This document shows, one piece after another, positions 1 through 52,142 of a stretch of DNA of 64,000 nucleotides. Made by a program: the position numbers and the translations under genes. The notes beneath the pieces are model-generated. The model worked only from the letters and a program-made list of their open reading frames with translations, was not told the origin of the DNA and made no database searches. Where the stretch lies: sequence record NC_042116.1. One strand, written 5' to 3'. Each line of letters starts with the position of its first letter. Within the stretch, counting starts at the first letter, position 1.

Positions 1-46
1 TGATTGATTCAGTACTAGATGATTTAGAAGAAGGTTCGCTATAATA

Positions 47-54
47 TATAAATA
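47..54 (+). promoter_or_regulatory. T4-type late promoter TATAAATA upstream of tail fibre gene
   Basis: Exact TATAAATA 34 nt upstream of the ATG at 89; T4 gp55-dependent late consensus. Confidence 0.65.
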
Positions 55-88
55 TCTCTATAATATATAAACTTGAGGACTGATTTAT

Positions 89-47582: not shown

Positions 47583-48116
47583 ATGCATAAAAAAGAATTA
47601 TTATACGCTATTCTTGAAGCTATTGCTCCTACCGATGTTGACTCATCTCATCTACAGACTATTGAACATAACGGTAAAGACCTATATATCACATTCAAAA
47701 ATGGAAGTACTTACGAGTACGATAATGTACCAGAAGCAATGGTACGCCAGATGTTGAAGGTAGATAGTAAAGGAAAGTTCTTGTGGCGTTATATTAGAGA
47801 CAAATATCCGTACCGCCAAATAAAAGCTATTCCACAACAAAAATTTGACACTAATCCAGATGCAGTGAAACAACGTTTAAAATACGATGTTGACAGTGGT
47901 GAATGGATTGATGCGTTAAAACCAGAAGAAATTAAAGCAGTTGAAGTTCCTATTGGACATGAATTTCGTGCACCAGATGGTGATACATATACATTCCAAG
48001 GACAACAATGGCGTAATAATAGAACTGGTAAAATTGCAAAAAAACATATTAGTCAAAAAATGACAGATATTGCAAAACGCATGTTGAAATTGAAAGGAAA
48101 AGCAAATGAAATATAA
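47583..48116 (+). CDS. KTSC-domain protein
   Basis: VDSSHL...[17 protein letters not shown]...[14 protein letters not shown] is a clear KTSC signature. Confidence 0.85.
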
Positions 48117-49692
48117 TCAATTAAATGAAGCGATAATTAAAGTACCGCCAGAATTACTTAATAAAGTAAACATGTATGTTGCATCATACCTCTATTTTAA
48201 AATTAACCAGTATATTGAACGTTTAAGTTTGTTTGTCTCAGCTAATACTACTGAAGAAGAAAAACAAAAAATTATTAAAGATGGTAAAAATACAATGCAG
48301 AAATTGCATTCTAAGTACGGTGCAAAAAATATATCTGCTGAAACAGCTTACAATATTTCAGGAAAAGCAATACACATACCATTTGATGTTGAAACTTTCT
48401 TTTCAGAATTAAATTTTAAAGGTGTTAATCATGGATTAATTTCATTACTTAAAAATAAAGTAAAAATTGAATTGTTTATAACTACAAATTCTAATGGTAT
48501 TTCTGGTTCTAAAGAACGTCATGGTACATTTTCACATTTAGTAACTGTTGTTGTTGGTAGACTTGGACCTAGACCATCCTTTTTAGAAACTGCTAATAAT
48601 ATTATGAGTACTACTTATCATGAGCTTCAACATGTTGTTCAATCACTTGCTATTGAAAACATTAATAAGTATGAAAAACAATTACAACGTAATGATGGAT
48701 ACTCTGATGTACATAAAGATCCAACCGATTATTATACTAGCGGATTAGAGTATTCACCACAATTAGGAAATTTAATTGATTATGTATCAGTAGAATTAGA
48801 AAAAAATACATTAGATGGAAATCTCAATCCTGACAAAAACATTGCAATAAAACATGCAATGAATAATGCCGTTCAGAAGAATAATGATGTTAGAACATTT
48901 TTAATAAGTTTATATAAGAAACAACCTGATCAATATAAAAAGGCTATGAAAAATGTCTACACTAGAATTTCACCAATTTACGATGACTTCAAGGAAAATG
49001 GATTAGATTATACATTTACTGAATTACCATCAGAACAATTAGAAGCTAGTATAGATGTTATGAAATCAGTATATAAATTGATGAGTAAAAATGATAATTA
49101 TAAAGTAAAAGCATTTGGTAAAGGTTTAGAAAATATTACACAATTGAAAATTTATAAACCACAATGGTCAATAACTTTAGATAAAAATCAAGTTAGAACT
49201 GATAATTACTATATAAGCATTTTTAGTACTGATCCAGAATTTGAAGAAGATGAAAAAATGGATGCCAAACAAGTACTAAATTTATTTGGGATACTTTCTG
49301 AAATATCATGGTACGATGCTACTGATATTGTTGATGATTTTGAAGTTATTACTGGTCAACGTCTTGAAGTAAATATTGAATCTATATATAATATAATTGA
49401 ATCATTACAATCTGATGCTAACGCTATGAATGTACAATTTGAGATTATTTCCAAACTATCATTTAAACTATTTGATAAAACTTTTGAAGTTTCTAAGGTA
49501 GAAGGTTCAAATGGTAAAGTTGATATAAAATATAATACTGATGAAACTTTATATGTATGGTCATTAAAACAATTTCTGATCGTGTTTCAATTAATGATTC
49601 GATATTATATAAGTTATCCAGATGAAGTCTTACAGATTTTGAATGATGGCGGTATGTATGTAGAATTTATGTCTAAATTAAGGAACTTATAA
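48106..49692 (+). CDS. Putative internal virion protein with zincin-like HExxH motif
   Basis: MKYNQLNE|AIIKVPP; [11 protein letters not shown]; YYTSGLEY. Confidence 0.65.
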
Positions 49693-52142
49693 TGCCTAGT
49701 AAAAGTAAAGCACAAGCTAGGTTCATGGCAGCGGCTGCACACGATCCAGAATTTGCAAATAAAGCTGGAATTAGTACTAATGCTGCTAAAGAATGGAACC
49801 ATGCTGATGAAAAAGCGGGTAATTTGAAAAAAACTTCAAAAAAACCCGAACATGTTAATGAAGAAGTTATAAATGAAGCAAGTGGTGTTGGCATTATAAA
49901 AGTACCACCAGCATTACTTAATAAAATTCAACGATATGTTGGATCTATTTTGTTAACTATGGGATATACAAAACAACAAGAACTCCAAAAACATGGAGAG
50001 ACAGAACAGTCAAAAGTACTAATTAATTACTTAAAACGTTTTCAACGAAAATATAATGCAGCAATTTTATCTCCTAATGATTTAAGAAAATATATTAATA
50101 GTGTAAGTACGGTTCCTCTTGATGCTGATGAAATTTTTAGCCAATTACCAGAAAATATTAAAAAACGTCCAGGAGCAAAAGAGTTAATACAAAATTTAAA
50201 ATTAAGACTTCGTATTTCAAATCAGCTAGTTGGTAGAGGTGGCAGTAATCAAACAAATGGTAATTTGAATATTCAAGAAATTGGAATACCATCATATTCA
50301 CAAAAGATTAAACCAGCATCTATTGATAACGTGGTACAATCATTAAATTATGCTATTGGTACAATAGAACATGAATTGCAACATGCTATTCAAACTACAG
50401 TACTTCAAAAATTAAATTCCAATGATAAACAGACTGAAAGAAAAGCTAGATATACTGATGGTGATGATGCATATTATGCTAGTGGGATTGAATTTGGCCC
50501 ACAAGTAAAAGATTTAGCATCAGCAGCAACGGACTGGTTAGAGAATAGACCAGATGAAATAACTGGTAACAAAAATACTGATATTAGTAATGCCATTAAA
50601 TATGCTATGTCTACCTATAGTCAAGGTAAAATTATTAATGCTCTAAGAAATTATAAACACAATGATCGTGCCAATAAAGCTATGAAATTAATTTACAGAG
50701 AAGTAAGTAACTTCTATGATAACGAATATGCTGATTTGAGTGATTCTGGTGAACTAGATACATCTGAACAAAATGTATTTGGGGATACTACTGATACTTC
50801 AGTTTCATTAGAGCATCCAGAACCAGGTCAATCTACAATGGGTGATTTGTGGTTAGCTATCAGTCAATACTTTGGAGAAAAGCCAGAAGGTTTTGGTTAC
50901 TATGATGATTTAAAGGAAATTAAAATCAAACGTCCATTTGGTGAAATTTCAATAGAGACTGCTAACAATGGTGGAGTTCATCTTTATGTTCGTGTAACTG
51001 GTAATAGAGAAAAATCTTGGAACATTGAATTAAATCCAGAACAATCTAAAAAATTGATTCAAGATGTGGCATACTTTAGTACTGAAAATACTATATCTAA
51101 ACTTAAAGATAAATTAGAAGAAGAAACGGCACCTCCTGCGGATCTTGCTAAAGCAGATTATATCGTTTATGATACTAATAATACGGAAAGTATATTTAAT
51201 GATGATTCTAATAAATCTGTACAAGCAGAATATGATCAAGATGAAGGTACTGTGTATGTACATTTCAAAGGTGCACGTGACAAAATGTATATTCAAGGTT
51301 CAGGTAAAAATTATTATATTGGATATGGTTCAGAAAATGGAATAATTTGTAAAGCAGCAGACTTTAAAAAAATAATGGAACTATTAATATCATTTTATTA
51401 TGAATCAGATACTACTGACAAAATGATTAGTCGTACATTACGCAGTATTTCTAAAAATGGGGGCACAATAACCCCGTCTGATATAGAATCGCAAATTGAA
51501 TATACAAAAAGGCTACAAGCTAAACACAGGAGTACTGCTGAAGTGACTGAATCAAGTATGCGTGGATGGGTAGATGTTATACAAAATGCAGAACTAGAGC
51601 ACGATATAGATGATGCCGATGAACAAACTTTAATTAACACTGATCGTATTGATGAGATGCCTCTAAAATACGATTCATTTATGGGAATGGACCCACAAAT
51701 TTATGTGGACAAAGAAGCCCAAATAAATAAACCAAAAAATATGAAACCTATAAAAAATCATGGTCAGTGGACAACTTATCGTGGTAAAAAAGGTTTTATG
51801 GCATATGACAATGATACTGGAGAAGCTATCGCCACGGTTGAAGGTCATGAAAATGATGGATGGTTTAATGTTGAAGTTACTGCATCAAGTCGTTCAGTAA
51901 AAGGAGTGGTTTATCAAATGTTTATGGATATCATCAATGAAGTAGGGATTCCCATTTTGAGTGGGAGATTGCAATCAAATGATGCTATGAATTTTTGGAA
52001 AAGATTAATTCAATCACATAAAGTATTTGTTGTTGCTAATGGCGAAGTAATACAACAAGCTACACCAGAAAAATTCCATAAGTACTGGAGTGATGAAGAA
52101 GGATCTCCACAATCACAATTCCAATTTTTATTAGTCAAATAA
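49692..52142 (+). CDS. Multidomain internal virion protein (MPSKS leader, HExxH zincin-like domain, C-terminal GNAT-like domain)
   Basis: [17 protein letters not shown]; INE|ASGVGIIKVPP; IEHELQHAIQ; YYASGIEF; LSGRLQSNDAMNFWKRL. Confidence 0.65.
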   Translation: MPSKSKAQARFMAAAAHDPEFANKAGISTNAAKEWNHADEKAGNLKKTSKKPEHVNEEVINEASGVGIIKVPPALLNKIQRYVGSILLTMGYTKQQELQKHGETEQSKVLINYLKRFQRKYNAAILSPNDLRKYINSVSTVPLDADEIFSQLPENIKKRPGAKELIQNLKLRLRISNQLVGRGGSNQTNGNLNIQEIGIPSYSQKIKPASIDNVVQSLNYAIGTIEHELQHAIQTTVLQKLNSNDKQTERKARYTDGDDAYYASGIEFGPQVKDLASAATDWLENRPDEITGNKNTDISNAIKYAMSTYSQGKIINALRNYKHNDRANKAMKLIYREVSNFYDNEYADLSDSGELDTSEQNVFGDTTDTSVSLEHPEPGQSTMGDLWLAISQYFGEKPEGFGYYDDLKEIKIKRPFGEISIETANNGGVHLYVRVTGNREKSWNIELNPEQSKKLIQDVAYFSTENTISKLKDKLEEETAPPADLAKADYIVYDTNNTESIFNDDSNKSVQAEYDQDEGTVYVHFKGARDKMYIQGSGKNYYIGYGSENGIICKAADFKKIMELLISFYYESDTTDKMISRTLRSISKNGGTITPSDIESQIEYTKRLQAKHRSTAEVTESSMRGWVDVIQNAELEHDIDDADEQTLINTDRIDEMPLKYDSFMGMDPQIYVDKEAQINKPKNMKPIKNHGQWTTYRGKKGFMAYDNDTGEAIATVEGHENDGWFNVEVTASSRSVKGVVYQMFMDIINEVGIPILSGRLQSNDAMNFWKRLIQSHKVFVVANGEVIQQATPEKFHKYWSDEEGSPQSQFQFLLVK

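Follow-up and report, generated by a model that had tools for sequence, protein, structure and literature searches.

Why is the genome of a large phage, of a kind expected to shed palindromes, filled with copies of a single six-base palindrome, AGTACT? The question arises from a stretch of 64,000 nucleotides of sequence record NC_042116.1 (hereafter the window), which corresponds to bases 186,001-250,000 of Yersinia phage fHe-Yen9-04, a RaK2-like jumbo phage of the genus Eneladusvirus with a genome of 354,378 bp and 31.6% GC. The window encodes a T4-type replication and recombination module (gp32, UvsX, UvsY, UvsW, a primase-helicase and parts of the polymerase) together with the large terminase, ribonucleotide reductase, topoisomerase II and many virion proteins. 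A first-pass annotation, made from the letters of the window, had remarked on the abundance of AGTACT and attributed it to a positively selected mark, with a mutational sink as the alternative. Here, we confirm that the enrichment is real and stronger than first estimated. We further propose, at a probability of roughly 0.45, that AGTACT is a selected word on the duplex DNA of the phage, that it is read by a two-fold symmetric factor and that it acts as a 'self' label.

AGTACT is the most over-represented hexamer of the genome

An exact count returned 130 AGTACT sites in the window (positions 11 to 63831), or approximately one per 490 bp, with sites in all frames and in both genic and intergenic DNA. 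Counted in successive bins of 10 kb, the sites number 20, 16, 22, 18, 19 and 24, with 11 more in the last 4 kb (60-64 kb), in agreement with the manual counts made at first (about 20 in 1-10 kb, about 17 in 10-20.2 kb and about 20 in 40-50 kb). In 100 dinucleotide-preserving shuffles of the window, the expected count was 15.75 ± 3.85 and the highest 32, so that 130 was never reached. The excess is therefore approximately 8-fold, surpassing the 5- to 6-fold enrichment originally claimed.

Across the whole genome AGTACT occurs 1008 times (one site per 352 bp), compared with 121 sites expected from a zero-order model and 86 from a dinucleotide model. The observed/expected ratio under the dinucleotide model (11.7) places AGTACT at the top of all 4096 hexamers, and its order-4 Markov z-score of 19 is likewise the highest of any hexamer. 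Phages delete short palindromes to escape restriction. Indeed, 22 of the 64 six-base palindromes are wholly absent from fHe-Yen9-04, including GGATCC, CTGCAG, CCATGG and CAGCTG; with these purged and AGTACT enriched, the genome avoids palindromes with one glaring exception. No description of AGTACT in these phages was found in the open-access full-text papers and preprints that were searched.

The excess is independent of coding constraints

Genes account for 857 of the sites. All three reading frames contribute (450, 105 and 302 sites), as do genes on both strands, which bears out what had been noticed by eye. Shuffling of synonymous codons in such a way that every protein was kept gave 200 ± 13 genic sites (maximum 238), while shuffling of whole codons gave 120 ± 10. 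Thus, the excess persists through the codon- and protein-preserving shuffles, as well as the Markov-corrected z-score, that had been put forward as a check. Density is higher in non-coding DNA (4.0 sites per kb) than in coding DNA (2.7 per kb), and the non-coding DNA alone contains 148 sites where 9.7 are expected. Together, the shuffles and the non-coding excess rule out a coding artefact.

Tests restricted to synonymous choices gave the same picture. In Lys-Tyr, Gln-Tyr and Glu-Tyr pairs that stand before a T, Tyr is written as TAC in 77% of cases after xAG versus 21% after xAA (odds ratio 12.4). Similarly, in Val-Leu pairs preceded by A, CTN codons make up 89% of the Leu codons that follow GTA. 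Among the dipeptides of the phage, Ser-Thr is the most strongly over-represented (1.55), with AGT-ACT writing 60% of Ser-Thr pairs compared with 15% expected. The selective pressure on AGTACT thus reaches the protein sequence itself, where it distorts dipeptide use.

Conservation, turnover and mutational neighbours of the sites

Conservation was assessed against Serratia phage BF, which aligns with fHe-Yen9-04 at 83% identity over 80% of the genome. AGTACT is conserved at 65% of sites, compared with 39% for hexamers in general, and ranks second among 489 frequent hexamers. Approximately 35% of sites have been turned over in each lineage while the totals are about equal, at 1008 in fHe-Yen9-04 and 1072 in BF. 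A lineage-specific gain lies within 100 bp of 22.8% of the lost sites, compared with 17.3 ± 2.3% of randomly chosen places and 12.7% of shared sites, suggesting that density counts for more than exact position. Taking this conservation together with the survival of the excess in shuffles, the non-coding excess and the dipeptide distortion, we conclude that AGTACT is selected on the DNA itself.

The one-mismatch neighbours of the word were then compared with expectation. Sixteen of the 18 stand at 1.06-2.75 of the expected number and only AGGACT/AGTCCT are low, at 0.64; the transition neighbours at the C position, AGTATT and AATACT, stand at 1.36. At each of the six positions, AGTACT outnumbers its neighbours approximately 6- to 8-fold. 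This is the pattern of a selected whole word surrounded by its decaying copies, and is unlike that of a one-base repair sink. A very-short-patch sink was accordingly rejected, given the transition neighbours at 1.36 and the contribution of all six positions. The conversion of GCGC to GTAC through double deamination was also rejected: the expected number of GCGC (tens to approximately 300) is too small to supply 1008 AGTACT sites, and the intermediates AGTGCT and AGCACT stand at expectation.

Flanking bases, early promoters and hairpins

The bases on either side of AGTACT are weakly and symmetrically biased. C is favoured and G avoided at -1, and T is favoured at -3 and -4, to give TTC-AGTACT-GAA. 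In this phage lineage and in the prophage lineage introduced below, G is found at -1 in 4-11% of half-sites, C or A being preferred, and T is preferred at -3 and -4. Left and right flanks show no complementarity beyond that given by single-position frequencies; they are chosen independently, which fits a dimer reading each half-site separately on duplex DNA and does not fit a hairpin. Self-pairing of an extended palindrome was rejected on the same ground, and a longer hidden motif was rejected because the flanks are weak and symmetric.

The sole peak in site spacing, at 20-21 bp, stems from early promoters and one tandem array. The early promoters are of the sigma-70 type and share the design AGTAC-TTGACA-like, N11-12, AGTACT, g/t, TATAAT, with a spacing between boxes of 20 or 21 bp, such that one box overlaps the first base of the -35 element and the other ends one base before the -10 element. 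There are at least 7 of these promoters in fHe-Yen9-04 (genome 2-10 kb), at least 12 in BF (3-17 kb) and at least 19 in Klebsiella phage K64-1 (225-244 kb), and their spacers are otherwise unrelated. Over the first 30 kb of the fHe-Yen9-04 genome, comprising the early region, AGTACT density is approximately twice the genome average. The tandem array lies outside the window at the right genome end (353537-353700) and repeats nine times a 20-bp unit that contains both AGTACT and TATAAT. It adjoins AGTACTACCCCCTGCCGCTA, which is conserved at the right end of BF, where the array is shorter. The array could be an end, packaging or origin element.

An intergenic hairpin reported by the first-pass annotation is indeed present at 11892-11912 on the plus strand, between g266 and g267 (genome 197893, site spacing 13). 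It reads AAGTACTAC-ATT-GTAGTACTT and is followed by a T run, and both arms of its stem contain AGTACT. From its sequence, it looks like an intrinsic terminator made from two copies of the word. Similar hairpins with AGTACT in the stem are found at genome positions 6349 and 268017.

AGTACT is shared among jumbo phages that lack GCGC

BF (1072 sites) is not the only relative to carry the word in quantity. K64-1, of the genus Alcyoneusvirus, has 940 copies, and the reversed control word numbers approximately 150. In both genomes the hexamer list is topped by AGTACT or CAGTAC, and in both the tetramer GCGC is absent. Its count is also zero in the 354-kb genome of fHe-Yen9-04, and no tetramer other than GCGC is missing from every one of the three jumbo genomes and of the nine prophages positive for a GIY-YIG nuclease (see below). 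A distant relative of 360 kb and 41% GC, drawn from IMG/VR, has an AGTACT observed/expected ratio of 23 and no GCGC. By contrast, Agrobacterium phage Atu_ph07, a sister jumbo phage and the nearest outgroup by UvsW, shows neither mark, with 2 AGTACT sites versus 5.4 expected and 49 GCGC versus 57 expected. E. coli K-12 contains 400 AGTACT in 4.64 Mb and 1147 copies of the reversed word; the phage is thus approximately 33 times denser in AGTACT. Other AGTACT-rich viral contigs recovered by the pattern scan were set aside as tandem or coding repeats with no genome-wide enrichment.

A second lineage, of enterobacterial prophages, carries both marks

A scan of IMG/VR for three clustered AGTACT sites led to a family of prophages of approximately 30 kb. 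In the proviruses G001-G004, AGTACT is the top hexamer at 9-15 times expectation and GCGC is absent where 24-62 copies are expected. Relatives are integrated in the genomes of Leclercia, Phytobacter and Enterobacter. The border between prophage and host is sharp, the host flanks being devoid of AGTACT and containing 14-38 GCGC per 2 kb. The family comprises 77 loci with terminase identity down to 41%, nearly all of which possess both marks, and is large and old. Flank preferences around AGTACT are the same as those of the jumbo phages, which we take to argue for the same reader specificity.

The two lineages are linked by lysozyme. Among 50,697 phage records, the 25 top matches listed for the prophage lysozyme (L163:11260-11721) all belong to RaK2-like phages, and the prophage endolysin matches the lysozyme domains of fHe-Yen9-04 at genome 162893-166095 and 105042-105908 with approximately 47% identity. 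This relationship points to gene exchange between the two AGTACT-rich lineages. None of the early, middle and late promoter designs of the jumbo phages was found in the prophage, and the possibility that it is a satellite using jumbo-phage promoters was therefore rejected. An identity look-up of one prophage protein returned no match.

Two members of the family depart from the rule on GCGC. G006 (92% complete) has normal numbers of both AGTACT and GCGC, while G007 has no AGTACT and normal GCGC; the two form one clade beside all other prophages. Three proteins are present in all 11 of the GCGC-free genomes examined and absent from G006, namely a GIY-YIG nuclease, a spanin-like protein and a protein of 107 amino acids. 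The nuclease is a stand-alone, SegE-like protein of approximately 148 amino acids (142-174) encoded next to the lysis genes (L163:11776-12222 in G001), and no sequence match was found between it and solved GIY-YIG structures. Of 74 loci retrieved through this nuclease, most lack GCGC; the few in which GCGC occurs extend past the prophage end, and we take that GCGC to be host flank. On the model of T4 endonuclease II, the nuclease makes a good candidate for whatever keeps GCGC out of these prophages.

The amount of AGTACT varies widely among prophages that carry the nuclease and lack GCGC, from 0-1 sites in G011-G013 (7-12 expected) via approximately 2-3-fold to 15-fold enrichment. G011-G013 (loci L339-L342) are inserted beside the asmA-dcd-udk-yegE-alkA-yegD locus and, though purged of AGTACT, still show a 1.8-fold enrichment of GTAC. 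Prophages of the purged type are common among the publicly available genomes of a non-Escherichia enterobacterial genus, while in Escherichia it was found in only 2 of 5426 genomes. GGTACT/AGTACC was considered as a substitute word in the AGTACT-free members and rejected, as it chiefly reflects the Gly-Thr codon pair and is no more than 1.5-2 times as frequent as in the rich members. Clustering of open reading frames (ORFs) revealed no accessory gene that is present in all AGTACT-rich prophages and absent from the purged ones. Hence, within the prophage family no accessory gene determines how much AGTACT a member carries; the deciding factor lies with the host, with a third party (a co-infecting phage, for instance) or with allelic differences in a universal protein.

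Candidate writers and readers

The first-pass annotation had offered several functions for the mark, among them a methyltransferase target and a protein-binding or self-recognition site. The former fares poorly. Methyltransferases of the N6/N4 type number two in fHe-Yen9-04 and one in BF, and none was found in K64-1 or the prophages; an enzyme of this family was rejected as the writer owing to its absence from the latter genomes, which also lack a ScaI-type gene. A protein-binding or self-recognition site, on the other hand, gives the best fit.

Several potential readers were considered. The host protein SlmA was rejected, since the flanks found in the phages are opposite to those of its site. 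Topoisomerase II of the phage, specified by the T4-type genes g320 and g321 (52613-56065, plus strand), is by annotation a two-fold symmetric enzyme; as a reader it is unsupported because the prophage family has no such gene. For the DsbA-like protein that had been named as a candidate, no tie to AGTACT was established. In the jumbo phages, a profile search revealed no SegE-type GIY-YIG protein, and the weak GIY-YIG matches obtained correspond to variable, homing-endonuclease-like ORFs that include g299 (described below). Small DNA-associated virion proteins would be natural reader candidates. Small proteins with a virion annotation (g279, g285, g287 and g289, of 72-132 amino acids) do lie inside the replication module at 23436-31863, where they have no Pfam match; when these proteins of the window and their neighbours were examined as reader candidates, no informative family emerged.

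A proposed 'self' label and its rivals

We propose that the putative reader has the specificity of a restriction enzyme or a dimeric repressor, with sharp recognition of six core bases and weaker preferences beside them (T T n C to the left of AGTACT and G n A A to the right), and we would expect it to bind TTCAGTACTGAA duplex in preference to a mutated one. It could come from the phage, the host or a co-infecting phage. The benefit to the phage would rise with copy number, exact position mattering less, such that sites would accumulate wherever coding and regulatory constraints permit. The places taken would then be genes, through bent codon and dipeptide choice, the stems of terminators, and the positions directly upstream of early -35 and -10 boxes. 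As a putative 'self' label, AGTACT would be paired with GCGC as the 'non-self' word, which is very common in enterobacterial chromosomes. The two words together would separate phage from host DNA without base modification, whether for host DNA destruction or for transcription takeover.

A broader version of this proposal, which we consider doubtful, is that two unrelated lineages of enterobacterial phages use the two words as a code instead of modified bases. GCGC would be the target of a phage nuclease on host DNA and AGTACT would be bound by a symmetric reader that exempts or favours the DNA carrying it, the arrangement being shared by co-occurrence or convergence. Small prophages may meet jumbo phages in the same cells and gain by passing as 'self'; alternatively, both lineages may have converged on the same reader.

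A number of observations weigh against the 'self' label and the code built upon it. The analysis yielded no reader protein. No gene for a ScaI-type or HinP1I-type nuclease was found in any genome examined, nor was there a methyltransferase family common to all AGTACT carriers (C5 and Dam-type enzymes were not searched). The extended motif TNCAGTACTGNA and the reversed control word each occur 5 times in E. coli K-12, and a host operator was rejected for lack of any such excess. The sole gene common to both lineages, by tblastn and profile hidden Markov models, is the T4-type lysozyme (44-49% identity). Site spacing is Poisson-like, with a coefficient of variation of the gaps of 0.94 and a largest gap of 2739 bp as expected by random placement, and is thus not that of a structural array. 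The association between the GIY-YIG nuclease and the absence of GCGC rests on one phylogenetic split. Furthermore, G011-G013 have purged AGTACT while the nuclease and the absence of GCGC stay. It follows that the two marks can be uncoupled and that a prophage does not require AGTACT to be immune to the nuclease.

Alternatively, AGTACT might be the target of a DNA modification (methylation, by an enzyme of either phage or host, or bulkier hypermodification), with many modified sites being selected, for example, to block translocating nucleases or to mark the phage's own DNA. Compact palindromes of six bases are what methyltransferases and restriction enzymes typically recognise, and the N6/N4-type enzymes of fHe-Yen9-04 and BF could be invoked, as could precedents: RaK2 DNA is reported to be methylated and resistant to many restriction enzymes (PMC3622015), HIP1 (GCGATCGC, of cyanobacteria), the closest analogue, is methylated by orphan enzymes (PMC4390886), and orphan methylation of AGTACT has been described in a giant virus (PMC7253447). 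We nevertheless judge this reading unlikely. K64-1 and the prophages are equally enriched without the N6/N4 family, no methyltransferase appeared in a Pfam scan of ten non-structural G001 proteins or in the ORF clustering of the family (other families were not directly searched), and methylation alone gives no reason for adding sites. It is similarly improbable that the reader regulates transcription from the early promoters, whether as an activator or as a repressor mediating early shut-off, with the other sites serving to concentrate it or tune its free level. Such a regulator would account for the two boxes at fixed -35 and -10 places in three genera whose spacers differ, for the doubled site density of the early 30 kb and for the AGTACT and TATAAT units of the right-end array. 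However, no more than some tens of the 1008 sites can be ascribed to promoter boxes, saturation extends to the late structural genes, the prophages are enriched without this promoter design, and a reshaping of dipeptides throughout the proteome would not normally be expected of a regulator. A slim chance is left for a recombination, repair, replication or packaging signal, for instance a palindromic Chi-like word that stops an exonuclease or starts recombination-dependent replication. The phage relies on a T4-type module with UvsX, UvsY, UvsW, gp32 and gp46/47-like functions, a palindrome functions in both orientations, HIP1 has been linked to recombination and transformation efficiency (bioRxiv 10.1101/2024.09.10.611283, PMC13756078), an AGTACT array lies near the genome end, and a copy-number benefit with Poisson spacing would suit a signal that has to be encountered within a short distance of any break. 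Set against this, the prophages show the same flank preferences without a recombination module of their own, and Chi is asymmetric and read as a single strand.

The remaining alternatives dispense with a selected function. Biased mutation or repair, by way of very-short-patch repair or palindrome-making template switching, could be suspected from the changes seen at sites between fHe-Yen9-04 and BF, among which C/T and G/A transitions at positions 2 and 5 predominate, and from double changes between AATATT and AGTACT, which are approximately 10 times commoner than independent changes predict. An excess of double changes is, however, also expected once the other half of a broken site turns neutral. 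No one-mismatch neighbour is depleted apart from AGGACT/AGTCCT, the rest having the look of decay products, and the excess involves all six positions and not C alone. Other palindromes are purged rather than created. Prophages copied by the host replisome retain AGTACT while the adjoining host DNA has none, the word is under-represented in the host genome (E. coli K-12), near-related prophages span 0 to 136 sites, and two lineages with different replication machinery show the same pattern. We therefore regard the sink named by the first-pass annotation as very unlikely. The chance that the excess is a by-product of codon usage, amino acid composition or repeated protein motifs is negligible. 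AGT, ACT, GTA and CTT are fairly common codons in fHe-Yen9-04, Ser-Thr-rich repeats are known in some phages, and several other viral contigs with clustered AGTACT proved to be such repeats; yet the synonymous and codon shuffles yield 4-7 times fewer sites than are observed, enrichment is strongest in non-coding DNA, and every frame and both strands contribute. Overall, the first-pass interpretation is supported in part. Its core attribution, to a positively selected mark, draws on the results of shuffling and of the tests restricted to synonymous choices, on the surplus of sites in non-coding DNA, on their conserved positions and on the occurrence of the word throughout the clade.

A clade that purges 22 palindromes yet keeps approximately 1000 copies of one, bending its own proteins in the process, implies an undescribed factor that reads phage DNA along its whole length. 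If a 'self' label coupled to the absence of GCGC is indeed at work, it would represent a modification-free way for viruses to tell their own DNA from that of the host. It would also help to track down the reader and the nuclease, provide a simple sequence signature by which such phages and prophages could be recognised in metagenomes, and supply a design rule for the engineering or recoding of RaK2-like therapeutic phages.

Other features of the window

Three local groupings of AGTACT within genes of the plus strand are of note. A pair of sites 15 bp apart lies in the tail fibre gene g253 (389-409), forming a close pair within coding DNA. A second pair, in g329 (61404-61430; genome 247404), has the 21-bp spacing of the early promoters, yet is in coding DNA. 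In the gene for a Dda-like helicase, g310, five sites (44143, 44226, 44281, 44334 and 44365) cluster within 230 bp (44143-44370).

The first-pass annotation had also placed AGTACT in an intron. The gene nrdB is annotated in two pieces, g298 and g300, within 37358-39525, and sites do occur between the pieces, one at 38353 inside g299 and another at 38982 ahead of g300. The intron itself was unconfirmed by Rfam, which returned no intron or other RNA family for the window at gathering score. ORF g299 (38206-38943, plus strand, 245 amino acids) gave no Pfam match at E ≤ 0.01 and a weak GIY-YIG similarity (PF01541, E = 0.004) that falls under the family cut-off. Judging from its sequence and placement, it is probably the homing endonuclease of an intervening sequence. 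A further nuclease, g293 (32255-32956, plus strand), is annotated as an exonuclease and belongs to the PD-(D/E)XK family (PF12705, E = 1.8e-6); it is one phage nuclease that could act on host DNA, and no link between it and AGTACT or GCGC emerged.

Two additional observations concern the phage more generally. A wastewater metagenome run from 2023, which is available as assembled contigs and was the one public run found to contain this DNA, includes 96% of the words sampled from positions 20000-26000 of the window, which indicates that fHe-Yen9-04 or a near-identical phage was present in the wastewater. In the fHe-Yen9-04 genome there are 13 copies of the E. coli Chi octamer GCTGGTGG on the plus strand and 5 on the minus strand, compared with approximately 1.4 expected from composition; the corresponding counts are 13 and 3 in K64-1, and 18 and 12 in BF. 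This excess may be a coding effect (Ala-Gly-Gly) or may reflect real use of Chi.

Comparison with known systems

Restriction-site avoidance also concerns six-base palindromic targets, such as the ScaI-type site AGT^ACT. Twenty-two others are avoided in fHe-Yen9-04, and the sister prophages G011-G013 have purged AGTACT in just this manner, to 0-1 copies. In fHe-Yen9-04 the sign is the opposite, with AGTACT enriched approximately 12-fold. Chi and the DNA uptake sequences offer another parallel, in that they are over-represented 'self' words by which RecBCD or the uptake machinery distinguishes own from foreign DNA, and in that density matters over position. They are, however, asymmetric, orientation-dependent words of 8-12 bases in cellular genomes, whereas AGTACT is palindromic, possesses symmetric flanks and is borne by phages.

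The SlmA site of E. coli, GTGAGTACTCAC, has AGTACT as its central six bases, and its reader is a symmetric dimer and an enterobacterial host protein. Its GTG...CAC flanks are nonetheless disfavoured by the phages, in which G is rare at -1 (4-11%), C being preferred there, and T rather than G is found at -3.

For the GCGC side of the proposal, the relevant precedent is T4 endonuclease II (DenA), a stand-alone GIY-YIG nuclease that starts the breakdown of host DNA and from which T4 DNA is exempt through base modification. The stand-alone GIY-YIG nuclease of the prophages is of similar size (142-174 amino acids) and accompanies the total absence of GCGC from the DNA that encodes it. The means of exemption would differ, with T4 relying on modification of its bases and the prophages on avoidance of the word by which the predicted nuclease would act. 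The jumbo phages, moreover, have no detectable GIY-YIG homologue of this kind.

HIP1 is the closest known system to the AGTACT word. It too is a short palindrome, over-represented tens of times, present in all frames and in non-coding DNA, conserved beyond background and variable among related lineages (PMC4390886, PMC5861425). HIP1 differs in being an octamer of a cellular genome that is served by two orphan methyltransferases, while the carriers of AGTACT share no methyltransferase; it has also been reported to be quasi-periodic, unlike the Poisson-like spacing of AGTACT. Furthermore, the carriers of AGTACT are viruses that otherwise purge palindromes, and in them the word is coupled to the absence of a second word, GCGC. 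AGTACT presents itself as a tractable viral counterpart to the 30-year-old problem of HIP1.

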